The translations under genes and the position numbers were made by a program. A stretch of 64,000 nucleotides of DNA from sequence record MZ475893.1; one strand, 5' to 3'. The notes under the pieces were generated by a model. The model ran no database searches and was not told the DNA's origin. It saw only the letters and a program-made list of their open reading frames with translations. Positions within the stretch are counted from its first letter, which is position 1; the number at the start of each line of letters is the position of its first letter. Below are positions 41,110-57,014 of the stretch, piece after piece.

Positions 41110-41931
41110 ATGCCAGAAGCACGCAAACCTCGCCCAGCTGATCGTTTCGCTAAAGCCCGTGCAGAGAAAAACTCACCGGAGCGTCAAGATGCGGCGGCCC
41201 AGCGCACGTATAAAGACACTCCGCCTAAATCTGTTCAGGTGAAACTGGATGCTGTGGCAGCTTCTAAGAAGAAAGTTTCTCGCGGTCCCAAGGCATCTCG
41301 TCCGCGTCAGTCGCCTGCTGTTGACGCATCGCCAAAGCCTCGCATTCGTGATGAGGAACGTGTGTACAATCTCGTACACATGATTCTCTCTGCGTGGAAA
41401 GCCGATGCAGAAAACGCGGCAGCAAGTGTGGGAATCGTTAAAGTGTCTCGGCGTAAGATTGAGGGTGCGTTACGCGATCTCAAGAATACGCGCTTTACTA
41501 AAATCCCAGGCTTAATCAATGACGTGCTTGTCTACAATGAACTGGTAGCTGAGTTCGGGCAGTGGGTGTACGTCGAGCACGACAGTCCTGATTGGATTTT
41601 TGTGCGCCTGCCTGAAAACAGCACGCCTGTGATTCGCGCTGACATTAGCTATGCCAAGACGGGTGAAACTTCCACGTCTGTTTCGACTTCTAGTGAAGTT
41701 CTGCTGAAAGATCTTAGCGAAGACGAAGAAGATGAGATCCCCGAGAATGTCGAGTACGACGATGCGGACGAGACTGACGAAGACGAAGAGGAGCCGTATG
41801 ACTACAGCGCTTGGTCTCTGCGTGACCTGCAGGATTATGCAAAGCGCTATGACTTCCTGCAGCCCGACACTGAGGGGTTCGATGATCGCGAGAAGTTGAT
41901 AGCAGCCATCGAGCTGGGGGAACAGCACTAA
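41110..41931 (+). CDS. basic N-terminus, acidic tract, C-terminal HeH-like motif
   Basis: AAGGA RBS; YSAWSLRDLQDYAKRYDFL...DREKLIAAI. Confidence 0.85.
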   Translation: MPEARKPRPADRFAKARAEKNSPERQDAAAQRTYKDTPPKSVQVKLDAVAASKKKVSRGPKASRPRQSPAVDASPKPRIRDEERVYNLVHMILSAWKADAENAAASVGIVKVSRRKIEGALRDLKNTRFTKIPGLINDVLVYNELVAEFGQWVYVEHDSPDWIFVRLPENSTPVIRADISYAKTGETSTSVSTSSEVLLKDLSEDEEDEIPENVEYDDADETDEDEEEPYDYSAWSLRDLQDYAKRYDFLQPDTEGFDDREKLIAAIELGEQH

Positions 41932-41985
41932 GCACAAATATGGACAAAATAGTGGTAGCATCTAAAGCATGACCTGTGCTACACT
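41932..41985 (+). promoter_or_regulatory. box promoter P10
   Basis: GCACAAATATGGACAAAAT-29 nt-TACACT with TG extension. Confidence 0.75.
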
Positions 41986-41991
41986 ATAGAT

Positions 41992-42046
41992 CGAATGCCT
42001 TGTAGTTTTTTGACTGTGAGTTACTTTCCGGCTCACAGTCCTTTTT
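41992..42046 (+). ncRNA. candidate small RNA (~55 nt)
   Basis: Between P10 and hairpin GACTGTGAG-11-CTCACAGTC-CTTTTT; no ORF before P11. Confidence 0.35.
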
Positions 42047-42104
42047 AAAGTGCTCTCCCAAGAACGCTTTAAAAAGCACAGACTGCCTGCGCTTTTGATA
42101 GACA

Positions 42105-42157
42105 GCATAAATCTGGACAAAATCATGGTTGTATCAGAATGCTGCCTGTCATACACT
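42105..42157 (+). promoter_or_regulatory. box promoter P11
   Basis: GCATAAATCTGGACAAAAT-28 nt-TACACT. Confidence 0.75.
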
Positions 42158-42218
42158 TTAATGAGTCGAGCAATAGTGCTCGCAACAAACTAAATCCCAA
42201 TACTGAGGAGTATTACAC

Positions 42219-43829
42219 ATGGCACGTTTCGAAACTAACACTAATCTGGTTGGCAAAACTATCGTCCTGCTGAACGGCACCAAAGCGAAGATTGAAGACG
42301 CTATCGTTTCTGGCTACAAAGTGAAAGGCCAGACCAAGCGCATCGCAACCCGTGACGTCATCAAAGAGGGTGCGCACTTTAAAGAAATCGAGCGCACGCC
42401 GCTGAGCCAGCTGGAAGATACTGGCGAAGGTTATGTGAAGTTGAAAGAAGCCAAAGCCGCTTCTAAGAAAGCGCCTGCGAAAGACGCGAAAGCTACTGGC
42501 AAAAAAGCTGCGGCAAAAGACAAGCCTGCTAAGACCAGCAAAAAAGCTGCCGCTAAAGATAAGCCAGCGAAAGAGCAAGAGCCGAAAGTTCGTCGTAAGT
42601 CTGCGAAAGAGCAGGGCAACGATTATCAGGAACTCGCGCAGGCTATCATCAAAGGCGGTCGCCGTGCAGCGCCAGTTGAAATTGACAGCGTGGACGAAGC
42701 GCTGACCGATGCAATCGCTAAGCGTCTGACCGCTGTTGTCGAATCGTCTGAGATTGCGAAACTCGCCGCTGATAACAAAACGCCGATCGCTAACGCACTG
42801 ACCGTAACTTACGGTGCTGAGTTTGCGACTGATGCAAACGTTGTGCAGATTACGCTGAACCTGCAATACGCTAAGCCGACTGCCGTTGAGTCTGCCGCTC
42901 CTACTCTGGAGAATGCCGAAGCAATCGCAATGCGTGCTGCTAAAATGGCCGCACCTAAAGTGAGCGCTAAACTCAAGAAGGCGGTGCGTGAAGCGTTCGA
43001 CATTGAAACAGACCTTGAGCTGGGTACTGTGATTATGTCAGGCGATGATCAATTCGCTTACTACGGCGAAAGCGCGAAGCACGCTGGCAAAGCGCTGCTG
43101 TACGTTGTCGAAACTGACAAGTTCAAATCTGTCCTGGCCTCTACTCTGACCGACTACGAACTGCCTGCTGATGAAGAAGCTGAGGCAGAAGAAGCTGAGG
43201 CAGAAGAAGAAGAGGAAGAAGAAGAAGAGGAAGAAGAAGAAGAAGCCGCTGATGACTTCGACGACGAAGAGGAAGAAGATGCGGACGATGCAGATGATGC
43301 CGACGATGCTGATGGCGACGACGACGAATTCCAGTACGTTGCTGTAGGCGATGAACACTTTGCTCTGGTCAACAAAAAGATCACAGCCAAGTATCACGAT
43401 GCACTGGCTGAGCAATTCGGCGTTAGCACCGAAGCGCTGGTCCCAGGCTTAGTGTTGACCAACGGCGAGATCACTTTCGCTTATCTGGGCAACGATAGCA
43501 AAGGCGGCCTGCTCGTTATCGACCTCGACGACGATGCGGACGAAGACGACAACGTTCTGGTCTACCCGAAAGCAGACGTCAAATCACTGACCGACTTCTC
43601 TCCTGTGCTGGGTGATGCAGATGAAGAAGACGCAGACGATGCAGAAGAGACCGACGAAGAAGACGAAGATCAGGACGACGACTTCGAATTTGACGATGCG
43701 CCAACTGCTGACCTCGAAGACCTGTCTGACGATGAACTGCGTGACCGCGCTGTTGAGATGGGCCTGACCACTGTACGCAAAGCTGACAAAATGAACGCCA
43801 AGCAACTGCGTGCGCTGCTGTCTGAATAA
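42219..43829 (+). CDS. Lys/Ala linker plus highly acidic protein with C-terminal HeH-like motif
   Basis: SD hairpin AATACT-GAGG-AGTATT; poly-Glu/Asp tracts; biased codon usage. Confidence 0.9.
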   Translation: MARFETNTNLVGKTIVLLNGTKAKIEDAIVSGYKVKGQTKRIATRDVIKEGAHFKEIERTPLSQLEDTGEGYVKLKEAKAASKKAPAKDAKATGKKAAAKDKPAKTSKKAAAKDKPAKEQEPKVRRKSAKEQGNDYQELAQAIIKGGRRAAPVEIDSVDEALTDAIAKRLTAVVESSEIAKLAADNKTPIANALTVTYGAEFATDANVVQITLNLQYAKPTAVESAAPTLENAEAIAMRAAKMAAPKVSAKLKKAVREAFDIETDLELGTVIMSGDDQFAYYGESAKHAGKALLYVVETDKFKSVLASTLTDYELPADEEAEAEEAEAEEEEEEEEEEEEEEAADDFDDEEEEDADDADDADDADGDDDEFQYVAVGDEHFALVNKKITAKYHDALAEQFGVSTEALVPGLVLTNGEITFAYLGNDSKGGLLVIDLDDDADEDDNVLVYPKADVKSLTDFSPVLGDADEEDADDAEETDEEDEDQDDDFEFDDAPTADLEDLSDDELRDRAVEMGLTTVRKADKMNAKQLRALLSE

Positions 43830-43850
43830 GTAACCTGTAGTTCTGAATAC

Positions 43851-43872
43851 ATGCGGCTCGAAAGGGCCGCAT
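43851..43872 (+). terminator. GAAA-loop hairpin without U-tract
   Basis: ATGCGGCTC-GAAA-GGGCCGCAT. Confidence 0.5.
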
Positions 43873-43904
43873 ACTGACAACAAAGTTGATTGAGGAATCA
43901 CATT

Positions 43905-45167
43905 ATGTCAAACGCAAATAAAATTCTGCTTAACGCTCGTGTACGTCTGTCCACTGGCACAACTACTTTCATCAACAAGATTAACGCGAACGGCTACGGC
44001 ATCGATGCTAAGGGCCCGCAGATTTCTGTGAAGCGTCTTGTTATCGCAGGCAAAATGCTCAAAGAGCTGGCTGAGCCGCTGCCGCAAGGTGAATACGTTG
44101 TGCTGAACGGCGTCACTGTGAAACTGAACAAGCGCCAGCAACGTGAGCTTGCAGAGAAAACGCTCGACACTAAAGCGCTGCTGCCTGATTTAAGCAAGCT
44201 GACCTACGTTGACCCGCAGACAGGCAAAGTCACTGACGCAAAAGTGAAGCAGCCGAAAGCTGGCGCGAAAGCAAGTCTGAAAGCAACGCGTGAGCACAAC
44301 AAAGAGCCGCAGCGTAGTCGCAAACAGCACAAAGCTGAAACGAACGATCTCAAAGACAGTCTGGACATTATCGACGAACGCAAATCACCGAAAGCGTCTC
44401 TGATTGAACGTCTGGATGCAGCAATCGCCGAAGCGAAAACGAAAGCACGCCGTAAGCTGTTAGCCGAAACGTTCGACATGGACTGGGCTGATATTAAAAA
44501 GCATGGCGGTGCGGGTATCGTTAAGCAGCACGGCCGCAAGAACGCCCAGAAGTTTATTGATCGTCAGACAGTGCAGGTCGATAGCACAACGTTCATCAAA
44601 CAAATGCCAGCGCCGCTCAAGCGTCTTATTCAGGACACTGAGTTGCGTCTCAATCAAAAGCAGATTGAGCAAGTGCTCGGTGCGCTGGGGCTTGATACGC
44701 AATTCTACGCAGTCGCCGTACAAGAGCTGCTGGGCAAACTCAAACTGTCCATAGGCGGTCGCGTGATCGAAGGCGAAGTTGTTCGAAAGGAGAACACGCC
44801 GAAGCCAAAAAGGTTCGTACACGCTGAGGCGATATATGCAGACAAGAAAGAAGCCAAGCGCCGCGTAAGCAAAATGAAATATGCGCTGCTGATTCCGCCT
44901 AAGAAAGGTCTGCCTGCGTTGCGTATGCATCAAATCGATGCAAAGCAGTCACTCGCCGTTCTGCTGCACCTGAAGCCTGGGAACATCAAGCGTGGTCTGC
45001 TCGCGTATGACAACAAAGGCCGTGAGTATATGTATGTCGCTTGCGATATGACGGGCCCTGTGTTCATCGATAAAGATAGCAACGAGCTGGCGTTCACGTA
45101 TGCCAATCTGATCGATAACTTCAAACTCAAAGCGCAGCCTGTGTCTGAACTGGACGTGGCCGTATGA
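43905..45167 (+). CDS. basic protein, apparent paralogue of 42219 gene
   Basis: SD hairpin TGATT-GAGG-AATCA; shared N- and C-terminal patterns. Confidence 0.85.
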   Translation: MSNANKILLNARVRLSTGTTTFINKINANGYGIDAKGPQISVKRLVIAGKMLKELAEPLPQGEYVVLNGVTVKLNKRQQRELAEKTLDTKALLPDLSKLTYVDPQTGKVTDAKVKQPKAGAKASLKATREHNKEPQRSRKQHKAETNDLKDSLDIIDERKSPKASLIERLDAAIAEAKTKARRKLLAETFDMDWADIKKHGGAGIVKQHGRKNAQKFIDRQTVQVDSTTFIKQMPAPLKRLIQDTELRLNQKQIEQVLGALGLDTQFYAVAVQELLGKLKLSIGGRVIEGEVVRKENTPKPKRFVHAEAIYADKKEAKRRVSKMKYALLIPPKKGLPALRMHQIDAKQSLAVLLHLKPGNIKRGLLAYDNKGREYMYVACDMTGPVFIDKDSNELAFTYANLIDNFKLKAQPVSELDVAV

Positions 45168-45550
45168 GAACTGAAATCATCGTAGCGGGAGTTCTCTCTC
45201 AACTTTACACGCGGCTGATTACGGCCGCTATAATGAAAGCGCATGTGTATTACTCAGACCTTGCGCCGGTGGTGTTCGGTGTGCAGCTTACCAAAGTCGG
45301 TAAGTCGCAGTATCAAGCGCTGTGGGATTTAGTAGCGCTGACGATGCAGATGGATCACGCACACGGCCGACCGCCTGTTGCTGCTCTGTATGTGTCTCGC
45401 GCTAATGCATCAAAACGACCGCCGCAAGCATTCTTCGCTGAATACGAGCGGCTAACTGGTAAGCGACTCAATGACGACGACTGGGAAGAGTTAGTCGATG
45501 AAGTATGGGCAGCTTACTCTCCACCAGAACTGTGTCAGGAGCCGACATGA
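45164..45550 (+). CDS. hypothetical protein, possible winged-helix fold
   Basis: YSDLA....GRPPVAALYVS...PQAFF pattern. Confidence 0.65.
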   Translation: MRTEIIVAGVLSQLYTRLITAAIMKAHVYYSDLAPVVFGVQLTKVGKSQYQALWDLVALTMQMDHAHGRPPVAALYVSRANASKRPPQAFFAEYERLTGKRLNDDDWEELVDEVWAAYSPPELCQEPT

Positions 45551-46005
45551 AGAAGTTGAAAGCCGTAAAGGTTAAAATTAGCCGCGGTGGTTATAAGCCT
45601 TCTTCTAAGGAAGAGGCAAAGAAGCTGGTGGCAGAGTTTCTGCTCGGTACCATCGGCATTAGCCCAACGCAAGTCAGTCAACAACTGCTGTTGAATATCA
45701 CGAACTACAACTATTTGACCTCTGTTGCGTATTCTGGACGTTCTACAGATTACAGCCAAGCGGCAGCGCACAAAACTGTAAAAGAACTAAATGAATTTTG
45801 TCGAAAGCATAAAATTCAACTGGGCTTGCTAATTATGCCCCACACGTCGGCGTCTGAATATGATGGTGACGTAATTGTTGCAATCCCGTGGGAGCATGTT
45901 AAGAACAATCCGCAAATCCAGTCTGCCGTTAATTCTCTGTTTGAATCGGTTGAAGCAGACGGCTACCCACAGTATGTGACTGATGCTAAAACAGTAGAGG
46001 GATAA
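45547..46005 (+). CDS. hypothetical protein
   Basis: AGGAG RBS. Confidence 0.75.
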   Translation: MKKLKAVKVKISRGGYKPSSKEEAKKLVAEFLLGTIGISPTQVSQQLLLNITNYNYLTSVAYSGRSTDYSQAAAHKTVKELNEFCRKHKIQLGLLIMPHTSASEYDGDVIVAIPWEHVKNNPQIQSAVNSLFESVEADGYPQYVTDAKTVEG

Positions 46006-46006
46006 G

Positions 46007-47287
46007 ATGTTCTACGACTATGTATTCAACTTCGACGAGCGCCAGACGCTACTGTCGTTAGCGGAATCCAAGTATCTTCTTAAACGGGACATTCCCGAGT
46101 ATCTTAAAAAGTCCAAACACGCAATTGAGATTCGTCACACTGTGACCAATCGTGGACGCGAGCGCCGCTCAGGAACAATAACAACTCCTATCGTGCCGCG
46201 TATTCACACCCGTGATGTTATGCGCTTGCTTGATGATATTCGTGACAACGCGACTTACAGCTCCTGCCAAAGTCTCGCTGAACTGTTTGAATTGGGCTTG
46301 GGCGTTCCGCGCCAGAAAGATATTGCTACTTACCTTCATGCTTATTCGCGTGAGCACGATAAGAAAGGTATCGGTATCAAGTATATCCGCAAGCTGGTGG
46401 TTGATTATCATCGTAAGCACCGTCGTAGTATGGCGGGCAGTCGCTGGTTAATGCCTGCTGCTTACACGGCCAATCTGCTGAACATGCAGAACTTCATTCA
46501 TCTGAAAGAAGACGGCTACAAGGGTAAAGTCAAAACGCCAGACGGCATCCCTGTAGTCTTGATTTACCAGAGCACTGAATACGCGACTGGCGAGTTTACT
46601 CTGTGTGACGCATTCATGATTAGTCCGATGGGATATCCAATGCCGTTCGCTCAGATTGCGCTGCGTCCCGAGTTCAAGGCTGTGCCTAAAACGTTTTGCT
46701 CCCAAGCTCTGCGCGGCAAAGGCATGTACTCAATGGTTCTCGGTATGATTTACTGGGAGAAAGGTGATTCAGTCGAATTGACACGCGAAGTCATGGAGAT
46801 TGATGACAACCAGTATCTCACGTTGCTCGATGATGAACGTTATGCTGACCGCCGCTCTGATGAATATTCAGCGATGCTGGTCAAGCGTGAAGAGTTCCGT
46901 CGCAATCGTGACAAGTGGCAGTCAGTGATTGATAAGTACGGCCAGACAGTTCGAACTCTCAAGCCTGAGATTAGCGCTCGTCTTGATCGTGCTCGTCAGT
47001 TCTTCTACGACCGCTCCGAGTTCCTGAAAGAGTTCGAGTCTCAGGAGAAGCGTGAGAACACCCGCGCATCAAAACGTTTTGCTGTAGCGTCTGCGATGTT
47101 TGCTGCGATTGACTGTGGGACAATTGCTGATCGTCAGACCTACCTTGCAGTGAGCACAAAGATTGATAAAGTGCATGACATTCTCGGTAAGTGGGGATTC
47201 AACACTGTAAAATCTGTTAATGCTAGTTTGAAGAAGTCTCTTTTAACCTATGACGAATCAGGCGTATCTCGCGTCTGGTCACTATAA
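46007..47287 (+). CDS. hypothetical protein with one Sel1-like repeat
   Basis: LAELFELGLGVPRQKDIATYLH. Confidence 0.75.
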   Translation: MFYDYVFNFDERQTLLSLAESKYLLKRDIPEYLKKSKHAIEIRHTVTNRGRERRSGTITTPIVPRIHTRDVMRLLDDIRDNATYSSCQSLAELFELGLGVPRQKDIATYLHAYSREHDKKGIGIKYIRKLVVDYHRKHRRSMAGSRWLMPAAYTANLLNMQNFIHLKEDGYKGKVKTPDGIPVVLIYQSTEYATGEFTLCDAFMISPMGYPMPFAQIALRPEFKAVPKTFCSQALRGKGMYSMVLGMIYWEKGDSVELTREVMEIDDNQYLTLLDDERYADRRSDEYSAMLVKREEFRRNRDKWQSVIDKYGQTVRTLKPEISARLDRARQFFYDRSEFLKEFESQEKRENTRASKRFAVASAMFAAIDCGTIADRQTYLAVSTKIDKVHDILGKWGFNTVKSVNASLKKSLLTYDESGVSRVWSL

Positions 47288-47308
47288 CCCTTATCTGAGG
47301 AGATAAAC

Positions 47309-50300
47309 ATGTCCGAGAACAATCAAAGCGGAGCTACTCGCTTCGGCACAGAAGTGCAGGCCGGCATCGCAGAAGCGCAACGCCGTGCTAACTCTGCTGA
47401 GAGTGGCAAGCTGAACAAATGCACGATCATCGTGCTGACTTCGATTGACGCCAACCAGCGTTACTCTTATCTGTCCGCAGACGAACAACTGCGCGAAGAA
47501 CTGGTGCGCGGTAAAGTAATCAACCGTCTGCCTGACCTGTTAGAGCGTGCTGGTGGTAATACCGCTGCTGACAATAACAGCGCGTTCCACATCCTGCACC
47601 CAAACAACGGCGTGCCTACCTCGATCGATGCTCGCATCAAAGTGGGCGAAGGCAATGCGGTCATTCTGTCGTATACTGTAAACAAAGCAGTGACAGAGAT
47701 GCACGGTAGCTTATCGCTTGCTCTGTTTGCATCTGGCGCCGAAGACTTAAATGATCTCGCCGCTGATTTCGGTATTCACGCAATTGCGATTGTTGAAGAA
47801 TCGAAAGCCGCTGAGTTCATCAAAGGACTTGAAGCTCAGGTGGAAGCGTTGAATATTGTAAATCTCACTAGCATTGATGATTCTAACGATTCGTTAGACC
47901 TGCCAGTGATTGACTTCGCTGCATTAGCGGGCAATCCTACAACAGTGCTTACGGGTGCTGTGCGTACCTTCATCATGCAATCAATCAGCGGCGAAGTCTT
48001 CGCTGCAATCCCTAATAACGGAGAACTGAACGTGAAAAACGATAACGTGGCTCAGCCTGCTGACCTGGAAGAAGACTTCGACAACAATGATGAGATTGTT
48101 GATCAGAACGGCGGCGAAGGCGAAGTTACTGGCGAAGAGCTGCTGGGCTACAAAGCAGAAAATCTTTCGCTCGACCAAATGCGTAGTGCGCTTGAAGCGA
48201 TCAACTACGACCTGTCTGAAATGACGGAAGAAGCCATCCGTGAAGCGTTCGAAACTGAACAGAACCTTTACCTGGGTGGCGGCGATGATGAATCTTCCGA
48301 AGAAGAGGAAGATGAAGACGCCGCTGATGTTGACAGCGACGAAGAAGAAGAGGAAGAAGACGAGGAGTTCGATGCTCCTGCGTATCTGGCTCAAGCGCTC
48401 GCTGCTGAAAACTTCAGCCGTAGCGATCTGAAACTGCTGGTCAAGTCGCAAGACCTGAAAGTTATGAAGAACGACACTCCTGAAACTCTGGTGCAGAAGC
48501 TGCTGGACCTGGTGCAGGACGCATCGTCTGATGAAGTGTTCGAACTGATCACTGTGTTCGTTGAACTGCTGGACGAGCACGGCGTTGAGTGTGACGCGCT
48601 GCGTGCTACCATCGCTGAGGATGAAAGCGATGAAGACGAAGAAGAGGACGGCGAAGACGAAGACGAAGACGCCGATGAAGATGGCGACGACGAAGAAGAG
48701 GAAGATGAAGAGGAGTCTGATGAAGACGAATCTGAAACCGAATCTGACGACGAACCCGCAACGCTGTTTTCTGCCTCTGACGTTACTGATCCTCTCGACT
48801 ACTTCCAGTTCGAAGGTGGTGACCTGACTCACGAACAACGCGCCGCTGCCGTACAGGCGATGGGTTCAAGCACTGTTGGTCTGAACATCGTTCAGGTCAT
48901 GAAAGCGTTCAATCAAATCCGTTCACAGTCTAACGCGATTGACATTGCCGCTGATGAAGCCGACTCTGCGCTGTACGACATGCTGACTGCGCTGCCGTAT
49001 GCAACGCTGCTGAGCTTCGCTCAAGAGATTGAGCTGGACGTTGATGGCGAAGAGTCTGCCGAAGATCTCGTCACTCTGCTGATGGACGAATCTACTGCCG
49101 ACAGCGATACGCTGAAAGCGCTGGCGTATGTGTTCGAAACCTACGGCGGCCTGGGTGTTGAAGCAGATGATATCCTGCTGATGGACTGGCATGAAGCGCT
49201 GGCGCTGGTTATTCCTGTGTATGCATCGTCAGACGAAGTTGAGTCTGATGCAGAAGAAGACGAAGACGAAGACGTTATCGCCGATGAAGATTCGTCTAAC
49301 GCTAACCTGAAGTTCCTGAAATCTGTTGACGTCAACAATCCTGTCGGCCCGATGCTTGAAGTTGATATGGACCGCACTCTGGTTATCAACTACACCTTCA
49401 CTGACGGTAACACTTACCGCGATGTGCAAGATGAGCTGGCTGATATCGGTGGCGTTAACTACCGCTTCCCGTTCAATCTGGGCAAAGCTGGTAAAGCAAA
49501 CAAGAGCAGTGCGCCTGGTAGCCTGATTGCTCCTGCTGAACATCTGATCGCAATGTTAGACCGCGCCGGTACTACCCGCTTCTTAGCTGACCCGAACACC
49601 TTCGATGTTGGTGTGTGGGCAGAATCTCTGGAGCGTATGCTGAACGCAGAAATCTCTAACAACCTGTACGCTGGTCGCATTGAAGATGGCGCTGACCCGC
49701 AGCAAGCTGGCATCGTAGTCGGTGACTTCATCGATGAAGACGAGCAAGCAGAAGTTGCTGACCTCGGCCTGCTGGATGAAGATGAGCTGGAAGCGTACAC
49801 TGGTGATCATCTGCCGATTGCAAGCCTGTACAATGCGCAAGCCCGCGTACGTCCAGTCAACGTCGATAGCTCTTACGTTGCACTGAGCACCGTAGTGCTG
49901 AACGTTGCAGTCCCTGGCTTCTGGTGTGACTCTGATGTTGGCCGTCTGGTGCAAGCGTGTGTTAATCGCGTAATCAGCCTGGCGGAAAGCGTTGAAGGCA
50001 TCAAAGTGTATGCAGGCTTCACTCTGGAATCTGCTGCGCTGCTGAACAACGGTCGCCTGTACGAAGTTGTTGGTGCGCTGCGTGAGATGGACGGTGTGCA
50101 GTCTTACTCTGCCGCAGACGCTGCTAACTTCTCAGAAGCGGAAGACATTATCGAAGTAGCGTCTTCTATCGATGATCGTGACCTGCCGTTCACTGTACTG
50201 GCAAGCGGCCTGTCTGGCGCAACGTTTGAAAACGGCGGTGACCTGACCGTGCTGGTTCCGTGCTCTGTCTTCGACGAAGAAGAAGATGAGTCCGAAGAGG

Positions 50301-50326
50301 ACGAGTCAGAAGAAGACGAAGAGTAA
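47309..50326 (+). CDS. 1005-aa extremely acidic protein with about three HeH-like repeats
   Basis: SD hairpin TTATCT-GAGG-AGATAA; several Asp/Glu tracts; strong codon bias. Confidence 0.9.
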   Translation: MSENNQSGATRFGTEVQAGIAEAQRRANSAESGKLNKCTIIVLTSIDANQRYSYLSADEQLREELVRGKVINRLPDLLERAGGNTAADNNSAFHILHPNNGVPTSIDARIKVGEGNAVILSYTVNKAVTEMHGSLSLALFASGAEDLNDLAADFGIHAIAIVEESKAAEFIKGLEAQVEALNIVNLTSIDDSNDSLDLPVIDFAALAGNPTTVLTGAVRTFIMQSISGEVFAAIPNNGELNVKNDNVAQPADLEEDFDNNDEIVDQNGGEGEVTGEELLGYKAENLSLDQMRSALEAINYDLSEMTEEAIREAFETEQNLYLGGGDDESSEEEEDEDAADVDSDEEEEEEDEEFDAPAYLAQALAAENFSRSDLKLLVKSQDLKVMKNDTPETLVQKLLDLVQDASSDEVFELITVFVELLDEHGVECDALRATIAEDESDEDEEEDGEDEDEDADEDGDDEEEEDEEESDEDESETESDDEPATLFSASDVTDPLDYFQFEGGDLTHEQRAAAVQAMGSSTVGLNIVQVMKAFNQIRSQSNAIDIAADEADSALYDMLTALPYATLLSFAQEIELDVDGEESAEDLVTLLMDESTADSDTLKALAYVFETYGGLGVEADDILLMDWHEALALVIPVYASSDEVESDAEEDEDEDVIADEDSSNANLKFLKSVDVNNPVGPMLEVDMDRTLVINYTFTDGNTYRDVQDELADIGGVNYRFPFNLGKAGKANKSSAPGSLIAPAEHLIAMLDRAGTTRFLADPNTFDVGVWAESLERMLNAEISNNLYAGRIEDGADPQQAGIVVGDFIDEDEQAEVADLGLLDEDELEAYTGDHLPIASLYNAQARVRPVNVDSSYVALSTVVLNVAVPGFWCDSDVGRLVQACVNRVISLAESVEGIKVYAGFTLESAALLNNGRLYEVVGALREMDGVQSYSAADAANFSEAEDIIEVASSIDDRDLPFTVLASGLSGATFENGGDLTVLVPCSVFDEEEDESEEDESEEDEE

Positions 50327-50332
50327 TTGACA

Positions 50333-50352
50333 TGCGGTCCTTCGGGGCCGCA
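50333..50352 (+). terminator. UUCG hairpin, identical core to 2720-2737
   Basis: TGCGGTCC-TTCG-GGGCCGCA. Confidence 0.5.
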
Positions 50353-50377
50353 ATCTTTCTCAACAGGAACTGTCTAA

Positions 50378-51199
50378 ATGTCAGAACAAGTTGACCACGC
50401 AACTAACATCATTAAGATGGTTAGTGACCGTGATGCTAAGATTAGCGAGCTGTCTGTTACGGCAAACGAGCTGCAAGGTCAGGTGAATGACTATGCTGCC
50501 GAACTCGCCGCATCTGCTGTGCGTGAAACTGCATTGCGTTTGAAGCTACGTTCTCAAGAGCGCCAGACGAATACCGATTTAGTTCGTCTGGAAACTCGCA
50601 CGAAAGAGTTGGTGGATATTTCAAACACTCAGATGGCCGAAAGTAACGAGCTTAAAGCACGCGTTGAAGAAATGAACGCTAAGCTGGCGCAAGTTGACCC
50701 GATGCCGTTCGTGCTGCATCTGGTTGCTGTGCAAGCCGCATCTGTGTTCTCGTACATGGTGCAGTCGTTTGCTCATGCTCATGTTAACCAGCGCACAAAC
50801 GATACCACACGCACACTCAGTGCTCTGATGGTAGGCGAGACAGCGCGGCGTTATCAGTCTTTCGAAAAGACCATCGCTCGCTACTGCAACTCGATTGGCG
50901 CTGAACGTCCGAAAGCAAATGATGTGCGTAACGCTTTCCCTGACTTCATGCGTAATGAAGCTGATTTATTCTGTAAAGACCCGAAGTACAGTCACGATTG
51001 CATGGCGTTAGCTGCTATGCTTAATCTGCCTCGTACATCGTGGATGTATCGAAAGTCTCTGGACGCCGTAAACCACTTCGCGTGGATTGCAGCTTTCGAA
51101 GGCAGTCCTCAAGAGTTTGAGTCAGATTCAGATTACAACGAATTATACGTTAACTCGCTTATCGATATTGCAAGCGCGTTAATCGGGCAAAACTTTTAA
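50378..51199 (+). CDS. coiled-coil hypothetical protein
   Basis: Heptad-rich N-terminal half. Confidence 0.8.
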   Translation: MSEQVDHATNIIKMVSDRDAKISELSVTANELQGQVNDYAAELAASAVRETALRLKLRSQERQTNTDLVRLETRTKELVDISNTQMAESNELKARVEEMNAKLAQVDPMPFVLHLVAVQAASVFSYMVQSFAHAHVNQRTNDTTRTLSALMVGETARRYQSFEKTIARYCNSIGAERPKANDVRNAFPDFMRNEADLFCKDPKYSHDCMALAAMLNLPRTSWMYRKSLDAVNHFAWIAAFEGSPQEFESDSDYNELYVNSLIDIASALIGQNF

Positions 51200-51224
51200 T
51201 CTGTAAAACTTCCCTGTGATTTAT

Positions 51225-51244
51225 TCTGTAAACACTAATTGAAG
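51225..51244 (+). promoter_or_regulatory. TCTGTAAACA(C/T)TAATTGAAG element, copy 1
   Basis: 19/20 identical to 51939-51958; both precede codon-biased genes. Confidence 0.5.
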
Positions 51245-51294
51245 TTCGCAACGGGCAAAAGCCCAAATCGAAAAATTAACGGAGTTCCACTACA

Positions 51295-51864
51295 ATGGCA
51301 AAAGCTACTAAGTCAACTAACCTGGTTCCTACCCTGGTTTCTCGCATCGCTAAAAAGTCTGGCTCTATCGGTACTTCGAAAGCAAAAGCAACTGACCTGC
51401 CGCATGACATTCTGATCGAATCTCAGCACGTTGTCGAAATCATCGGTTATATCACTGACCGTTCTGCGAACCACGTTACTCTGCGTCACAAAAAAGGCCA
51501 CGGTTCTTCTTCTCAGATCGTTTCAACCTTCGGCCCGGGTCAACTGCTGACCGTTCTGGGTGAAGCCGGTTCACACGGTTCTGTGCGTGCGCTGATTACT
51601 GCTCCGGTCTGCGAACTGAAAGGCTTCACCATTAAGTATGACGGCGATACCATCATCGCTACTTCTATCGAAACTGGCGAAGTGATTCACGTTAACACCC
51701 AGCTGGCCGGTCACACCGTTCGCGCTACTGTGAACGAAACTGCCGCCGCTAAGAAATACGGCACGCCTGCTCCAGGCAAAGGCAAGAAAGATGCTAAGCC
51801 TGCTAAAGCAGACAAAGCAGCGAAAGGCGGTAAGAAAAAGAAAGGTAGCGACGAAGACTTTTAA
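51295..51864 (+). CDS. abundant basic protein with Lys/Ala tail ending SDEDF
   Basis: GGAG RBS; strong codon bias. Confidence 0.9.
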   Translation: MAKATKSTNLVPTLVSRIAKKSGSIGTSKAKATDLPHDILIESQHVVEIIGYITDRSANHVTLRHKKGHGSSSQIVSTFGPGQLLTVLGEAGSHGSVRALITAPVCELKGFTIKYDGDTIIATSIETGEVIHVNTQLAGHTVRATVNETAAAKKYGTPAPGKGKKDAKPAKADKAAKGGKKKKGSDEDF

Positions 51865-51897
51865 TCGCTGATCTGAAAATCTGTAAAAACTGATTAT

Positions 51898-51927
51898 GCA
51901 GAGCAACAAAAAATAAAGTTGCTCTGC
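51898..51927 (+). repeat. perfect 10-bp inverted repeat with A-rich loop
   Basis: GCAGAGCAAC-AAAAAATAAA-GTTGCTCTGC. Confidence 0.8.
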
Positions 51928-51938
51928 CGTTAAACGAA

Positions 51939-51958
51939 TCTGTAAACATTAATTGAAG
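51939..51958 (+). promoter_or_regulatory. TCTGTAAACA(C/T)TAATTGAAG element, copy 2
   Basis: See copy 1. Confidence 0.5.
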
Positions 51959-51994
51959 CAAGTCGCTTCTCATCCCATACAGGAAATAAAAACC

Positions 51995-52786
51995 ATGGCT
52001 AAATCTGCTAAAGTAACCGTAACCGTCGCACAGAAAGTTCTGGCTCAGATGCTGGGTGTTGTTGTAGCGAACGCAAGCGAGAAAGAACTCGTTGCGATTC
52101 TGTCTGACCTGGGCCTGACTGTTGCTGCGAAAGGTAAAGGTGCTAAAGCTGAGAAAGCTGCGAAAGGCGGCAAGAAAGCTAAAGCCGCTACCGTTGCTCA
52201 GATCGTTAAGGCCGTTGAAGAAGAGGAAGCTATCTCCCTCGACGGCGTAAGTGAAGATGACCTGCGTGCTGCGGTCATCAAAGCTAAGCTGGCTAAGGCC
52301 AACAAAGCTAAAGCGCTGGACGAAGAGGAGTTGACTGAACTCCTGACCGACGCAATGGGTGCCGAGTCTGATGAAGACGAGGAAGAGGAAGAGGACGAAG
52401 AAGAAGAAGAGGACGAAGACGACTCGGACGACGAAGACGAAGATGAAGACGACGAGGACTCAGATGATGAAGATGAGGACGAAGACGACGAAGATTCGGA
52501 CGACGAAGACGAGGACGAAGATGATGAGGACGAAGACGAAGACGAGGATGAAGATGAGGACGAAGATGAAGATCTCGACCTCGACGGCCTCGACGAAGAC
52601 GAACTCCGCGCCCTCGTGATCGACAACAAGCTGGCCACTAAGGCCAAAGCTAAAAAGATGGACGAAGACGAACTTCGTGAACTGTGTGAATCCCACTTCG
52701 GCGGCGACGATGAAGACGAAGACGAAGATGAGGACGAAGACGATGAAGACTTCGACGACGAAGACGAAGACGAAGACGACGAATAA
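51995..52786 (+). CDS. Lys/Ala N-terminus, two HeH-like repeats and very long Asp/Glu tracts
   Basis: AGGA RBS; LDGVSEDDLR.. and LDGLDEDELR.. repeats. Confidence 0.9.
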   Translation: MAKSAKVTVTVAQKVLAQMLGVVVANASEKELVAILSDLGLTVAAKGKGAKAEKAAKGGKKAKAATVAQIVKAVEEEEAISLDGVSEDDLRAAVIKAKLAKANKAKALDEEELTELLTDAMGAESDEDEEEEEDEEEEEDEDDSDDEDEDEDDEDSDDEDEDEDDEDSDDEDEDEDDEDEDEDEDEDEDEDEDLDLDGLDEDELRALVIDNKLATKAKAKKMDEDELRELCESHFGGDDEDEDEDEDEDDEDFDDEDEDEDDE

Positions 52787-52801
52787 GTCCTGATCTGCCG
52801 C

Positions 52802-52836
52802 TGCCCTGCAAGACTAATGAGTGTCTGCGCAGGGCA
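52802..52836 (+). terminator. hairpin after stop
   Basis: TGCCCTGC/GCAGGGCA outer and AGAC/GTCT inner stems. Confidence 0.45.
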
Positions 52837-52999
52837 AGAAATATTCGAAAAATAGTTCGAATTATTTCGCAAAAAGTTTGAAAAATTCCTGTCGTTGTTT
52901 ATTGCACATAGTAATATTCGACTACAGGAATTAAACCTGAAAAATTTTACTTTTATCCAACGCGACGAGTCGCACACAATAAATTCACGGAGTATTACG

Positions 53000-53512
53000 A
53001 TGACTAAGAAAATCATTTCTGGCCTGAACAAAAACCTGAAAGCTATCGCTAAATCAGAAGCTGCCCTGGCCAAAACTGTTGTTGCTACCAACAAAGAGAT
53101 CGAAAACCTGGGTTCACAGCGTGCTGGTATCGAAGCGCAGATCGCTGAACTGTCTGGTGTTGCTGCTCCTGCCAAAGCTGATAAAAAAGCTAAAGGCGCC
53201 AAAGCTGAAAAAGCGGCCAAGCCTGCTAAAGCTGAAAAAGCAGCTAAAGCAGGTAAGAAAGAAAAAGCTGCTAAAGCTGAAAAGCCTGCCAAAGCTGATA
53301 AAAAAGCGAAAGGCGCCAAAGCTGAAAAAGCTGCTAAGCCTGCTAAAGCAGACAAAGCTGGCAAGAAAGAAAAAGCTGCTACCAAGCCTGCTAAAGCTGA
53401 TAAAAAAGCGAAAGGCGCCAAGGCCGACAAAGCTGCTAAAGGCGGTAAAGCTGACAAAGCCGGTAAGAAAAAGAAAGCGCAGTCTGATGACTTCGAATTC
53501 GAAATGGAATAA
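53000..53512 (+). CDS. histone H1/AlgP-like Lys-Ala-Pro repeat protein with N-terminal coiled coil
   Basis: GGAG RBS; three imperfect copies of PAKADKKAKGAKA(E/D)KAAK; ends SDDFEFEME. Confidence 0.88.
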   Translation: MTKKIISGLNKNLKAIAKSEAALAKTVVATNKEIENLGSQRAGIEAQIAELSGVAAPAKADKKAKGAKAEKAAKPAKAEKAAKAGKKEKAAKAEKPAKADKKAKGAKAEKAAKPAKADKAGKKEKAATKPAKADKKAKGAKADKAAKGGKADKAGKKKKAQSDDFEFEME

Positions 53513-53544
53513 GCAAGCGGTCGCATAGCGCGATAACTTGATCG

Positions 53545-53577
53545 AGAGGGCAGCGCTGACGGGCGTTTGCCCTCTTG
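53545..53577 (+). terminator. hairpin/terminator
   Basis: AGAGGGCAGCGCT-GACG-GGCGTTTGCCCTCT. Confidence 0.55.
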
Positions 53578-53609
53578 TCGTATCTATCTCATTTTCGAGG
53601 CTCTTTAAA

Positions 53610-54095
53610 ATGTCCAAACAAGAAGTATTCAACAGGCTTGATGATCTTCACTCCAAAGAACGTGAACGTATCAAACAAGCCAAGCAAGGTCCCTCCTATT
53701 TCGAACTGACGAACCTGCGTATTGAAGCAGCCGCTCGTCTCGCTCGTGCTCTCCAAACTCTCAAAGCCGCAAACGTTGTTGGTAACGTTGAAGGTGTCTC
53801 TCTGCAGGAAGATGCGCTTGAAGTCGCTCAAGCCTACTGGACTGCTATCTTAGATGGCTTAACCCCTGTAGTAGTTGATGGCTCGCCTATGCGCAAGCTG
53901 CTTGATGGTATGCCTGCATGTATCGAAGCGTTCCGTGTTGTCGTAATGGAAAGCGCTATGCGGGAACATCTGGTCGTTCAATGCAATGCGATTGCAGATG
54001 ACATTAAGGGTTTCCCTCAACTGACTGGGCATGTTCTGCCTACTGTTCAACACACCTGCGAAGAGGGGTGCAACTGTGGCTCAATCACTGAGTGA
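53610..54095 (+). CDS. hypothetical protein
   Basis: GAGG RBS. Confidence 0.75.
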   Translation: MSKQEVFNRLDDLHSKERERIKQAKQGPSYFELTNLRIEAAARLARALQTLKAANVVGNVEGVSLQEDALEVAQAYWTAILDGLTPVVVDGSPMRKLLDGMPACIEAFRVVVMESAMREHLVVQCNAIADDIKGFPQLTGHVLPTVQHTCEEGCNCGSITE

Positions 54096-54846
54096 GAAGA
54101 TTAACCGTTACTTCAATCTGATGGAGGACATCCGCGCTGAGATGTTCCGTGTAATTGACGTATCTGACCGTTACTTCGGTATCGTTAGTTTCAACACTAA
54201 CATGCAGGCACTGCAAACCACACTGGTGAGCAGGTCCACCCTGATGGAAGTTAAGCTGCTTGAGGGTATCAAAGGAGCGGAGCTGATTGCGTTTGGCAAT
54301 ATGGTTCACACCGTAGAGCAATGGGTTGCTGGTGGCATGAAGGGCGCTTTCCCTATCGAGCAGACCAAAGACGTGTATGCCAAATATCGCGCTGCTACCT
54401 CAGATGAACCACAGGCACAAAGTGAACCTGAGCCTGCTAATGCACCGCAGACTGATGCAGATGTGTTAGACCCCCAAGAGCTGGACAATATCAAGGTTCA
54501 ACTTCTATCCTTCGATGACTCTGAACTGATCGACCATGCCGCTCAGTTTAAACTCGGCACTCGTACACGCCTGCGTTGCATGGGCCGTGACGACCTGCTG
54601 GACATGCTGTTTGACCATCATGGTATCTATGCAGAAAACGACCAGCGCCGCAATGAAAGTGTTGCAGACTGGTTAGAGCGTATACCTCTTGATGATGCTC
54701 TCCGCGAAGTCGACCGCATAGATGATAGCAGTGTACTTGATCACGTTGCGGACGCTATGAGCGTTATGTCGGGTGTCAATGACGCTGTGACGCGAGCGCG
54801 TATAAAGCAGTCGCTGAAAGAGCTACACACTAAGCCTGCTCAGTAA
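54076..54846 (+). CDS. hypothetical protein with HeH-like motif
   Basis: GAGGGG RBS before GTG; LLSFDDSELIDHAAQFKLGTRTRLRCMGRDDLLDML. Confidence 0.75.
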   Translation: MAQSLSEKINRYFNLMEDIRAEMFRVIDVSDRYFGIVSFNTNMQALQTTLVSRSTLMEVKLLEGIKGAELIAFGNMVHTVEQWVAGGMKGAFPIEQTKDVYAKYRAATSDEPQAQSEPEPANAPQTDADVLDPQELDNIKVQLLSFDDSELIDHAAQFKLGTRTRLRCMGRDDLLDMLFDHHGIYAENDQRRNESVADWLERIPLDDALREVDRIDDSSVLDHVADAMSVMSGVNDAVTRARIKQSLKELHTKPAQ

Positions 54847-54986: not shown

Positions 54987-57014
54987 ATGGCGAAAACGCC
55001 TAAAGCCGCAAAAGTCAAAAAGGGTGACGGCTCCCAAGATGGCTTCACTATCGCAGAAGGCCTCGACGGGATTCGACTAAACCCTGGCATGTACATGGGT
55101 CAACAGGGTGCGGACATGGCGTATCGCGCTGTGAAAGAACCTGTGGACAATGACTACGATGAATACATCGCAGGTCGTAACAAGTTGATCGAAGTGGTCA
55201 TTGATTACGATAGCGACCTGAACATCGTAGCTGACCAAGCAGGCGGCATTCCTACCGACTTCAAGAAACTGAAAGACGGTACGAAAGAAACGATCATGAC
55301 CGCAGCGTTTAGCCGTGTTCATGCGGGTGGTAAATTCAACGATCAGGCATATAAGACCTCTGCTGGTACACACGGTGTAGGTGTAGCTGCACTGAACGCA
55401 ATCTCCAGTCAGTTGCGTGTGTGGTCAATGTACAAAGGCAGTTGCGCTTATCAGATGTGGCAGTGCGGCGAAGTCAAGTCTGGCAAAGACCCTAAGAAAG
55501 TCAAGACCATCGACAAAGACGTTATGAGCCTGCTGCGCGATAAGAAGCACAGCAAGTACGGTACTGTGGTAGCGTGGACGCTTGACCAGACTGTTGTGTC
55601 TGCTGATGCACAGCGTGGTAAGAAGCTGCCTAAGAACTATCGCCACGCTGCTCCTAATCCAGCTCAGCTTGGTGAGTGGCTGCGTAACATGTCAATGCTC
55701 AACCCAGGCCTTGAGATTCGCCTGACGTTGATCAAGAAGGGCAAGCGCAAAGAGTTCACGTTCATCAACAAGAAAGACCTGAACTATGTTGTGAAGACTA
55801 TGTGTGAAGAACGCGAGCTGGGAACTGTCGGCAAGCCGTTCATCTTCAAGTCTGACAATATCACGGCTGCGCTTGCTTGGACAGATCATGCAGACACTGA
55901 CAACTTCCTCAGTTTCGTTAACACCAGCCCAACAGTTGACGGCGGGTGGCACGTTGTAGGTTTCCGTGATGCGCTGTTTGATGCCATCAAGCCTTTCATG
56001 AAAGAGCCGAAAGGTAAGGGCAAGAAGAAGAAGCAGGGCTTCAAGCAAGAAGACTTGTTAATTGGCCTGACAGGTATGTTCGACTGGCGTATGCACGGTG
56101 CTCAGTACACCTCGCAGGTAAAAGACAAGCTGGCCAGCCGCGTCGAGAAAGACGTGTACGAAATGCTGAAAGATGCTTTCGTGAAATACTTCAAGGACAA
56201 TAAGAAGGTCGCTACGACAATCATCAAGCGTGCCGAAGCGATGAACAAGGGACGTGAAGAACTCAGCGCCGTCGTTAAGTCTATGGCTGATACGAAGAAG
56301 AAGCTGAAAGGCAACGCACTGCCTGCTGACCTCGTTGTCGCAAACAAGTGTAAGCCGCATGAGCGCGAGCTTGTCGTGGTGGAAGGGGATTCTGCTGGTG
56401 GTACTGCGAAAGATGCGCGTAACCCTGACTATCAGGAAGTTATGAAAGCTGGTGGTAAGCCTCTGAACGGTCTGAAAGCAAGTCTGGCTGACGTACTCAA
56501 GCACAAAGAAGTGCAGGGCATGCTGGTGAGTATCGGTGCTGACCTGAAGTCGCTTGACCCGAAAGCAGAAGCACCTAAGTTGAGCACAAAGAATCTGCGT
56601 ATCGGCAACATCCTGTTCCTTGCTGATGCTGACCCAGATGGCTTCCATATCAACGTGCTGTTCCTAGGCGTTATCTATCGCTTGCTGCCTGACTTGATGA
56701 AAGAAGGTCGTGTGTGGATTGTTGACGCACCGCTGTATAACGTTATTCATCAGGGCAAACACTACGGTGGTATGACGTTTGAAGAATGCCGTGCTAAAGC
56801 GCCGTCTGCTGTAAAAGACAAAGACATTGTACGCGCTAAAGGTTGGGGTGAAGTTGAACCTGACGTGCTTGAAGCAATCGCGTTCAATCCGAAAACTCGT
56901 CGTCTCATTCGTGTTAACCCGTTTGAGAACGTTGAGCAGGAGCGGTTCTTTAGAGGTGTAGTTGCAGAAGATGCAGTTCACCGTCGTCGCTTGCTTGGTC
57001 TGGAGGCAGCATAA
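54987..57014 (+). CDS. gyrB: type IIA topoisomerase subunit B (GyrB/ParE-like)
   Basis: IRLNPGMYMG, EPVDNDYDE, DQAGGIP, HAGGKF, GTHGVG, VEGDSAGG, DADPDG. Confidence 0.95.
   Translation: MAKTPKAAKVKKGDGSQDGFTIAEGLDGIRLNPGMYMGQQGADMAYRAVKEPVDNDYDEYIAGRNKLIEVVIDYDSDLNIVADQAGGIPTDFKKLKDGTKETIMTAAFSRVHAGGKFNDQAYKTSAGTHGVGVAALNAISSQLRVWSMYKGSCAYQMWQCGEVKSGKDPKKVKTIDKDVMSLLRDKKHSKYGTVVAWTLDQTVVSADAQRGKKLPKNYRHAAPNPAQLGEWLRNMSMLNPGLEIRLTLIKKGKRKEFTFINKKDLNYVVKTMCEERELGTVGKPFIFKSDNITAALAWTDHADTDNFLSFVNTSPTVDGGWHVVGFRDALFDAIKPFMKEPKGKGKKKKQGFKQEDLLIGLTGMFDWRMHGAQYTSQVKDKLASRVEKDVYEMLKDAFVKYFKDNKKVATTIIKRAEAMNKGREELSAVVKSMADTKKKLKGNALPADLVVANKCKPHERELVVVEGDSAGGTAKDARNPDYQEVMKAGGKPLNGLKASLADVLKHKEVQGMLVSIGADLKSLDPKAEAPKLSTKNLRIGNILFLADADPDGFHINVLFLGVIYRLLPDLMKEGRVWIVDAPLYNVIHQGKHYGGMTFEECRAKAPSAVKDKDIVRAKGWGEVEPDVLEAIAFNPKTRRLIRVNPFENVEQERFFRGVVAEDAVHRRRLLGLEAA

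Follow-up and report, generated by a model that had tools for sequence, protein, structure and literature searches.

A conserved block of highly charged proteins beside the topoisomerase II genes of Erwinia jumbo phage pEa_SNUABM_45, with a possible role at phage DNA

Bacterial SSB, T4 gp32 and T7 gp2.5 are single-strand DNA-binding proteins with acidic C-terminal tails, and histone chaperones of the nucleoplasmin/NPM type, like the acidic tail of HMGB1, are acidic-tract partners of basic chromatin proteins. For jumbo phages outside the chimallin group, we know of no way in which a replicating genome of 260 kb is organized or shielded. Condensate-forming DNA-binding proteins have been described from the replication factories of eukaryotic DNA viruses (adenovirus DBP, PMC8473285; vaccinia H5, PMC12633886), and a report on Mycobacterium smegmatis Ku states that its PAKKA repeats modulate DNA binding (PMC3553676). 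Here, we compare with these systems a block of strongly charged proteins (gp319 to gp331, positions 41,110 to 54,846) encoded by the Erwinia jumbo phage pEa_SNUABM_45, in a stretch of 64,000 nucleotides (the window) that makes up the final 64 kb of its sequence record. The block lies just upstream of the topoisomerase genes, as a preliminary description of this DNA had noted, and these prove to be a topoisomerase II pair, one GyrB-like and the other GyrA/ParC-like.

Comparison with other phages revealed that these genes form a set, uncharacterized in every member, that is conserved from Erwinia to Pseudomonas phages and anchored by the gp327/PaBG gp126 family. A domain logic recurs in it, in which a basic core carries an acidic tail or is accompanied by an acidic partner. 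The likeliest target of the module is DNA inside the infected cell, where it would work alongside the machinery for replication and topology. More specifically, and with a confidence somewhat short of an even chance, we propose that its products may be abundant proteins associated with DNA within the cell, with acidic partners tuning their binding.

Over region 41000-55000 the sequence matches, at 100% identity, that of Erwinia phage pEa_SNUABM_45 (MZ475893.1, 263,891 bp; window coordinate = record coordinate - 199891), which belongs to the genus Snuvirus and to the PaBG/"Lupandier" group, a clade name that also takes in the Pseudomonas phages PaBG and Lu11 (PMC7412058). Seven sister phages are 97-98% identical over the same region, among them pEa_SNUABM_7 (RefSeq NC_061451, Snuvirus; 97.5%), and relatives at the protein level (57 records) occur in Alexandra, Y3, Yoloswag, Dickeya phage AD1, JA11/13/29/33 and one Yersinia phage. 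Throughout the window the genes lie on the + strand, and each is deposited as "hypothetical protein"; the open reading frames (ORFs) picked out in the preliminary description are real, their coordinates agreeing with the deposited gene calls. The block shares its gene arm with sigma factor, SSB, UvsX-like recombinase and topoisomerase II genes, and the virion arm is distant from it and in the opposite orientation. None of the papers that could be searched deals with these genes.

Strong aspartate/glutamate (D/E) or lysine/alanine (K/A) tracts occur in only 9 ORFs across 262.6 kb of the pEa_SNUABM_7 genome, and five of these nine fall within this 11-kb block (binomial P = 1.6e-5). As first described, gp320, gp325 and gp328 are strongly acidic; gp319, which had been grouped with them, is only mildly so (net -14) and is bipolar, and it is a peripheral member of the block, present in Snuvirus and Alexandra and not in Y3 or JA13. 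An AlphaFold2 model of gp325 (mean predicted local distance difference test [pLDDT] score of 71) has every D/E tract disordered, with scores below 50 in the acidic tracts, and predicts a helix, a linker of about 10 residues and a second helix at all three helix-linker-helix sites (pLDDT 84-92). The acidic gp320 and the basic gp321 have an N-terminal domain of about 60 residues in common (BLASTP E=2e-4). The unit AKA(D/E)KAAKGGK, previously noticed in gp327 and gp328, is present in both and in gp329 as well, and constitutes one repeat family at the DNA level. Charged parts have been swapped between neighboring genes during evolution. Termini are conserved too: the C-terminal end of gp328 (DEDFDDE..DEDEDDE) is invariant in the Erwinia/Dickeya clade comparison, and the tip of gp329 reads DDFEFEME, DFDFDME or GFEFELDD across genera.

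The sequence anchor of the module is gp327. Its AlphaFold2 model, built on a 20-sequence alignment, predicts a confident beta-rich domain flanked by disordered basic and K/A/G-rich segments. A profile search against 1.84 billion representative proteins (clusters at 50% identity, E<1e-3) yielded a family of 74 clusters, which we define by a beta domain of about 110 residues, a conserved T-x-R-H-K...S-T-F segment and charged tails on either side. N-termini rich in K/R are found in 46 of the 74 clusters and K/R-rich C-tails in 28, while 32 end in an acidic tip (at least four D/E in the last eight residues) that in 29 cases includes F, W, Y or L. In a further feature of distant phages, long poly-D/E tails are joined to the gp327-type beta domain (10/74 clusters). 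PaBG gp126 matched the gp327 profile at E=1.5e-26. In the BFVD database of predicted viral structures, gp327 matched proteins of Alexandra and PaBG and two unnamed entries (E 1e-11 to 1e-25) and a protein of Achromobacter phage Motura (5e-4), all of them uncharacterized relatives within this phage group.

The synteny that the preliminary description proposed to check was found, in that the module is conserved across genera and adjoins DNA-metabolism genes. The block is collinear in Alexandra, Y3, Yoloswag and JA13, with its charge features and terminal motifs kept, and PaBG has collinear counterparts in gp131, gp128, gp127, gp126, gp125, gp124 and gp122 (Table 1), several of these correspondences being moderate profile scores combined with synteny. 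With gp325, the hhalign probability for PaBG-gp127-like proteins was 20% when three sequences were used and rose to 90-93% only with a six-sequence profile, and hmmsearch with the gp325 profile did not recover these proteins. Because PaBG carries this series of counterparts, the core of the module is old. The enterobacterial branch later added gp319, gp326, the C-terminus of gp331 and, in gp325, both the N-terminal domain and the acidic-helical middle. Farther afield, gp328-like genes come after gp327-like genes on short remote contigs (L017, L021, L013), and in distant phages gp329-like genes do so as well. On two longer remote contigs (142 and 205 kb) the order is a PaBG-gp127-like acidic protein (about 350-400 residues), a gp327-like protein with a basic N-terminus and an acidic C-terminal tail, a small protein consisting of a coiled coil and a basic tail, and topoisomerase II; on the 205-kb contig, relatives of window genes gp337, gp339 and gp340 follow topoisomerase II.

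Two other features of the remote contigs deserve mention. Upstream of the module, two of them encode a GHKL-type ATPase (HATPase_c_3; L016:2596-4185 and L019:7145-8647, 30% identical to each other) of which no counterpart was recognized in the window. On the 142-kb metagenomic contig, both topoisomerase II genes (L016:11691-14741 and L016:16224-19289) have intein and homing-endonuclease hits in the precomputed Pfam results (Intein_splicing with HNH_3 or LAGLIDADG_3).

The codon bias remarked upon earlier for several block genes was borne out. Expressed as an index of E. coli-type optimal codons (on the author's own list), usage reaches 0.78 in gp327, 0.77 in gp329, 0.72 in gp328, 0.68 in gp320 and 0.67 in gp325, against a window mean of 0.55 (standard deviation, 0.07); these are ranks 1, 2, 3, 5 and 7 among the 89 window genes. 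The five genes reach the level of capsid and sheath genes, given values in pEa_SNUABM_7 of 0.77 for the major head protein and 0.69 for the tail sheath, compared with 0.58 for SSB and 0.55 for the clamp loader (SSB, clamp loader, sigma factor and terminase span 0.49-0.58). As gp327 is mostly globular, its value is no artifact of repeats. From codon usage, the block proteins are probably very highly expressed. That they might be structural parts of the virion had been named among the findings that would overturn the original proposal. PaBG is the one relative with a published virion list, comprising 14 proteins obtained from Coomassie-stained gel bands and mass spectrometry (PMC7412058), and none of gp122 to gp131 is among them; this list, the product of a shallow method covering Coomassie-visible bands only, argues against their being major virion components.

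Alignment of intergenic regions brought out two classes of promoter-like sequence motif. Class A (CTGGACAAAAT, -35-like hexamer, 17 nucleotides, then TATAAT or TACACT) lies ahead of gp316, gp319, gp320 (twice) and the topoisomerase II large subunit, with 5 matches versus 0.4 expected. Class B (TCTGTAAA) has 10 matches in the window versus 2.2 expected, all on the + strand, and its 31 copies in the 262.6 kb of pEa_SNUABM_7 are every one on the coding strand, mostly 25-60 nucleotides ahead of start codons and often right after a terminator-like hairpin (CTTCGGCTGCCCTTTTT). The clamp-loader and sigma-factor genes also have it upstream, and the gp327 and gp328 orthologues of Y3, Yoloswag, Alexandra and JA13 have it in a conserved position; eleven virion-arm genes (head, sheath, tube and others) were inspected, and it was not seen upstream of them. 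We regard class B as a candidate promoter, either one used by the sigma factor that the phage itself encodes or one of the middle class. A search for a common late-promoter motif upstream of head and tail genes gave nothing clear, and a scan with the sigma-70 consensus gave no enrichment (16 sites versus 15.6 expected).

The leaders of the block also contain RNA-like elements. The stem-loop upstream of gp329 has a conserved loop and 18 predicted pairs, of which four show compensatory changes when five phages are compared; it sits in an AT-rich region with repeated TTCGAA. A near-identical pair of hairpins (GACTGTnAG...CTnACAGTC, then CTTTTT) is found ahead of gp319 (40958-40985) and gp320 (42012-42040), each about 50-60 nucleotides downstream of a class-A site; these may represent short RNAs or serve as attenuators in the leaders. 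Rfam gave no family in 39.5-60 kb, and ARAGORN found no tRNA in the window, although the sister phage pEa_SNUABM_13 has a tRNA-Glu annotation in the region that matches.

Searches of Pfam, PHROGs and NCBIfam with all block proteins returned compositional or sub-threshold hits only, and PDB sequence searches with gp327, gp324 and gp325 gave no match. Against PDB structures, Foldseek returned nothing below E=0.04 for the gp327 model or below 0.07 for the gp325 model; when the gp327 list was checked for OB folds, an RPA chain appeared at a probability of only 0.38. Nor was a chimallin recognized in the block by the three family databases, in agreement with the preliminary description, and the RefSeq annotation names none in the rest of the genome, although no whole-genome chimallin search was made. 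Alexandra has served as a comparison phage outside the chimallin group in a core-genome study (PMC10299810).

The label "H1/AlgP-like" previously given to gp329 did not survive this analysis. No Pfam domain, linker histone or other, was found in the protein, and no relative with a name was returned, so that the likeness is one of composition only; a search of 5.8 billion proteins gave one unnamed hit (E=1.9e-4), the candidates being saturated by low-complexity words. We rejected linker histone H1 itself, since there was no Pfam, NCBIfam or informative PHROG match and the N-terminus is instead of the coiled-coil type, and also an AlgP-type K/A/P-repeat protein, there being no named hit and a different repeat unit that contains D/E. 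A nucleoplasmin-type chaperone was set aside as well: neither Pfam, PDB sequences nor a Foldseek search of PDB with the gp325 model gave a match, and acidic tracts alone are in common. Finally, the eight helix-linker-helix motifs in five proteins failed formal tests as SAP/HeH domains. Their best Pfam scores fell below the cutoffs (Ish1, 21.5 bits versus 26.6; SAP, 19.3 versus 23.9; LEM, 14.6 versus 24), as did the Ish1 hit of gp319 (E=2.9e-4), and SAP hit 2 of 19 orthologous motif copies. A profile of the motif found no other copy in the genome and no SAP, LEM or Rho chain among PDB sequences, and leave-one-protein-out profiles did not recover the omitted copies. We therefore use "helix-linker-helix" as a structural description only.

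Charged tails also occur elsewhere in these genomes. Both topoisomerase II subunits and the clamp loader have lysine-rich N-terminal tails, and the C-terminal tail of SSB (about 130 residues), in which acidic and lysine-rich blocks alternate, is conserved from the Erwinia phage to PaBG. Charged disordered appendages are thus a lineage-wide trait of the DNA machinery and not of the block alone. Two further proteins of pEa_SNUABM_7 may be noted. gp192 (161754-162419, minus strand, in the virion/late arm) is a 221-residue protein of KKPAAKK type, nearly devoid of acidic residues, and so resembles histone H1 more closely than gp329 does; its optimal-codon use is high (0.74), and its upstream region resembles that of gp329. 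gp149 (108885-110957, minus strand), which lies between the head protease and major head genes and is annotated "ATPase," has a D/E tract, about 180 residues long, with repeated DEDFDSES units and cysteine pairs; its sequence suggests a scaffold or an internal head protein more than the annotated enzyme.

How might such proteins work together? We envisage that gp327, as a small basic beta-domain protein, and gp329, as a coiled-coil oligomer with a K/A-repeat tail, would bind DNA through their lysine-rich parts. The acidic, hydrophobic-ended tips of the same two proteins could compete with DNA for these parts or bridge them, and the long D/E tracts of gp328, gp320 and gp325 could do likewise. 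DNA binding would in this way be tuned, and a multivalent electrostatic network around the phage DNA would organize it; topoisomerase II, SSB and the clamp loader could join through their own charged tails, concentrating these enzymes. A stronger version, which we consider unlikely as it stands, is a shell-less, charge-held, coacervate-like compartment around the replicating DNA, with gp327 and gp329 as binders, gp325, gp328 and gp320 as scaffolds, and topoisomerase II, SSB and the clamp loader partitioning into it. Binding between the partners, any compartment, and compaction, phase separation or shielding by the block proteins are all things that we infer from sequence. If the proteins do coat or condense DNA, they would be viral nucleoid proteins of a new class, with acidic regulators built in, as well as a simple system for charge-driven assembly in bacteria; a 2026 review of jumbo phage biology mentions neither condensates, phase separation nor histones. 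Even with another function, they would probably rank with the most abundant products that this phage group makes outside the virion, and all are annotated "hypothetical."

The partnership between acidic and basic proteins that had been suggested at the outset gains comparative support from the gp327 domains fused to poly-D/E tails and from the gp328- and gp329-like genes that come after gp327-like genes. The notion of one-to-one chaperoning does not hold: taking one copy of each, the acidic proteins sum to about -380 and the basic proteins of the block to about +81, so that the former are not simply chaperones of the latter, and partners outside the block are favored under any reading. This excess is one of several points that weigh against a role as abundant, acid-tuned DNA-associated proteins. 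DNA binding is proposed from composition only, and no block protein matches any family or fold of DNA-binding proteins, histones, chaperones or DNA mimics. The module of PaBG is found close to sigma, SSB and UvsX genes and does not adjoin topoisomerase II, so that its link with topoisomerase does not hold everywhere. The promoter classes were recognized as sequence motifs and not from expression, high codon adaptation fits abundant virion proteins equally well, and very acidic or K/A-rich proteins could have escaped staining or tryptic mass spectrometry in the PaBG virion study.

The same excess of acidic charge suits another explanation, in which gp325, gp328 and gp320 would act as nucleic-acid mimics and sequester DNA-binding proteins of the host (nucleoid proteins, nucleases or defense sensors) while the lysine-rich proteins coat phage DNA, so that the host is taken over or the phage protected by charge mimicry. 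Since such acidity exceeds the basic charge of the block, outside partners would be needed; the acidity is extreme and its D/E tracts are disordered, early-type promoter-like sites precede gp319 and gp320, and codon usage suggests abundance. Against this, there is no fold match to any solved DNA-mimic protein, the acidic tails fused to the gp327 domain in remote phages indicate an internal partner and not a host target, and genes for host-specific counter-defense are not usually conserved, as these are, across phages of Erwinia, Dickeya and Pseudomonas. We judge charge mimicry a minority possibility. Rather more improbable is that the proteins are packaged inside the head or aid its assembly, the basic ones neutralizing capsid DNA and the acidic ones serving as scaffold-like or loading partners. 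Their codon usage does equal that of the major head protein, and gp149 with its D/E tract and the KKPAAKK-type gp192 are encoded in the virion or late arm, but the block itself is in the replication-gene arm, far from and opposite to the structural arm. It also shares a promoter-like motif with the clamp-loader and sigma-factor genes that was not seen before the eleven virion-arm genes inspected, and the 14 virion proteins detected for PaBG include none of its counterparts.

A role directed at RNA (transcript handling, or transcription-translation coupling in which the helix-linker-helix motifs and lysine-rich tails bind RNA or ribosomes) seems to us decidedly improbable. It would accommodate the conserved RNA-like hairpins in the leaders, the ability of K/A-rich tails to bind any polyanion, and two motifs with sub-threshold likeness to SAP, LEM and Ish1, which are of the helix-extension-helix type. 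That likeness is not significant, however, given the failure of the leave-one-out and PDB profile searches; the neighbors of the block are DNA enzymes, and no Rfam family was found. Least probable of all, and close to being dismissed, is the absence of any joint function, with the block a set of unrelated, fast-evolving, low-complexity ORFans of like composition. The searches of families, solved structures and folds did return no described family, and beyond PaBG-related phages and metagenome contigs only uncharacterized relatives, yet mere likeness of composition fits poorly with collinearity from Erwinia to Pseudomonas phages and remote metagenomic contigs, with fusions of the gp327 core to acidic tails, with conserved terminal motifs and with a clustering P of about 1e-5.

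Table 1. Features of the charged block and its surroundings (window coordinates unless another sequence is named; aa, amino acids; pI, isoelectric point) and counterparts in PaBG
Feature	Position	Strand	Remarks
SSB gene	window 1-151 (gene end); pEa_SNUABM_7 199300-200556 (gp245); PaBG gp117 (L022:14683-15894)
Class-A promoter-like site	40856..40900	+	upstream of gp319; TATAAT
Class A, further copies	39657, 41940, 42113, 54870		41940 and 42113 before gp320; 54870 before topoisomerase II large subunit
gp319	41110-41931	+	273 aa, net -14; K/R/P-rich basic N-terminal half, acidic C-terminal half
gp319 C-terminal helix-linker-helix-like motif	41797-41928	+
gp320	42219-43829	+	536 aa, net -67
gp320 N-terminal beta domain	42219-42398	+	about 60 aa; common to gp321 (BLASTP E=2e-4)
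gp320 K/A-rich tail	about 42441-42611	+	folded middle part after it
gp320 D/E tracts	about 43161-43328 and 43590-43700	+
gp320 C-terminal SAP/HeH-like motif	43710-43826	+	SAP E=8.6e-4, under cutoff
gp321	43905-45167	+	420 aa, basic, net +29
gp322 and gp323	45164..46005	+	small, charge unremarkable; conserved in Erwinia/Dickeya clade; no family match
gp324	46007-47287	+	426 aa, basic, net +14; no family match
gp325	47309-50326	+	1005 aa, net -187, pI 4.05
gp325 folded N-terminal domain	about 47420-48028	+	residues about 38-240
gp325 helical middle	48029-49300	+	three helix-linker-helix units, four disordered D/E tracts
gp325 folded C-terminal domain	about 49301-50263	+	residues about 665-985; homologue of PaBG gp127 family; acidic tip after it
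Terminator-like GC-rich hairpin and T-rich sequence	50333..50352	+	after gp325
gp326	50378..51199	+	273 aa, N-terminal coiled coil; Erwinia/Dickeya clade only; weak coiled-coil hits only
Class-B promoter-like motifs (TCTGTAAA), two copies	51200..51232	+	upstream of gp327
gp327	51295-51864	+	189 aa, net +11; basic N-terminal segment
gp327 beta-rich domain	51403-51732	+	residues 37-146; invariant T-x-R-H-K loop; pLDDT about 90
gp327 K/A/G tail and DEDF tip	51763-51861	+	at other end from basic segment
Class B, second pair	51880-51946	+	upstream of gp328
gp328	51995-52786	+	263 aa, net -96, 56% charged residues, longest pure D/E run 25; order: N-terminal helical part, K/G/A patch, helix-linker-helix, D/E tract of about 70 aa, second motif, D/E tail
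gp328 helix-linker-helix motifs	52235-52360 and 52580-52702	+
Conserved stem-loop	52887..52929	+	about 70-110 nucleotides upstream of gp329
gp329	53000-53512	+	170 aa, net +27
gp329 N-terminal coiled coil	53000-53161	+	read from heptad-like pattern
gp329 K/A repeats	53162-53479	+	about one acidic residue per nine
gp329 acidic-aromatic tip	53480-53509	+	DDFEFEME
gp330 and gp331	53610..54846	+	gp331 N-terminal domain related to PaBG gp122 (E=2.4e-5)
gp331 C-terminal helix-linker-helix motif	54481-54624	+	Snuvirus and Y3 only
Topoisomerase II large subunit (GyrB-like)	54987..57014	+	K-rich N-terminal tail
Topoisomerase II subunit (GyrA/ParC N-terminal domain)	57749..59410	+	K/A/V-rich N-terminal tail of about 50 aa
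PaBG gp131			gp320-like; hhalign 78%
PaBG gp128			gp324-like, probable remote counterpart; hhalign 74%, E=2.8e-5, 205 columns
PaBG gp127			gp325 C-terminal domain; hhalign 90-93%, E about 1e-6, about 235 columns, six-sequence profile
PaBG gp126			gp327; E = 1.5e-26
PaBG gp125			mini gp328; 150 aa, net -93
PaBG gp124			gp329-like; E=4.5e-13 but high compositional-bias score
PaBG gp122			gp331 N-terminal domain; E = 2.4e-5

Returning to the systems named at the beginning, we stress that the block proteins may work like these and are not put forward as members of them. Viral nucleic-acid-associated proteins with acidic regulators are already known as a kind, and the block may supply further examples from new protein families. 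As in the SSB type, relatives of gp327 begin with a basic segment, continue with a folded beta core and a flexible linker, and end in an acidic tip that includes a hydrophobic or aromatic residue, and they are encoded among replication genes; the DEDF end of gp327 itself corresponds to the acidic C-terminal tip with its hydrophobic residue. However, no OB fold or SSB family was detected for gp327, the phage has a separate annotated SSB gene (pEa_SNUABM_7 gp245), and some relatives of gp327 carry poly-D/E tails of 40-90 residues in place of a short tip. With nucleoplasmin and HMGB1, the block shares long D/E tracts beside lysine-rich sequences of the DNA-compacting type, and the phages offer both an intramolecular version (the fusions) and an intermolecular one (gp328 beside gp327 and gp329). 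It differs from nucleoplasmin in having no nucleoplasmin core, family or fold, in belonging to a bacterial virus and in the excess of acidic charge over that of the basic partners.

The low-complexity K/A-rich repeats of gp329, and more so those of gp192, recall AlgP and the PAKKA tails of mycobacterial Ku and Hlp, but the gp329 repeats, with about one acidic residue in nine, stand on a coiled coil and end in an acidic-aromatic tip, and no homology was recovered. Adenovirus DBP and vaccinia H5 have no sequence or fold relation to the block; the likeness would lie in an abundant viral protein with disordered charged regions that is encoded with replication functions. Finally, the comparison with the chimallin nucleus of the Chimalliviridae is one of need. 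No chimallin-like protein was recognized in the block, and the present phage has a sigma factor and host-type promoter-like sites, but in both cases a jumbo phage must organize a large replicating genome. Should the coacervate-like compartment exist, it would be a second, non-chimallin answer to the organization and protection of jumbo phage genomes.

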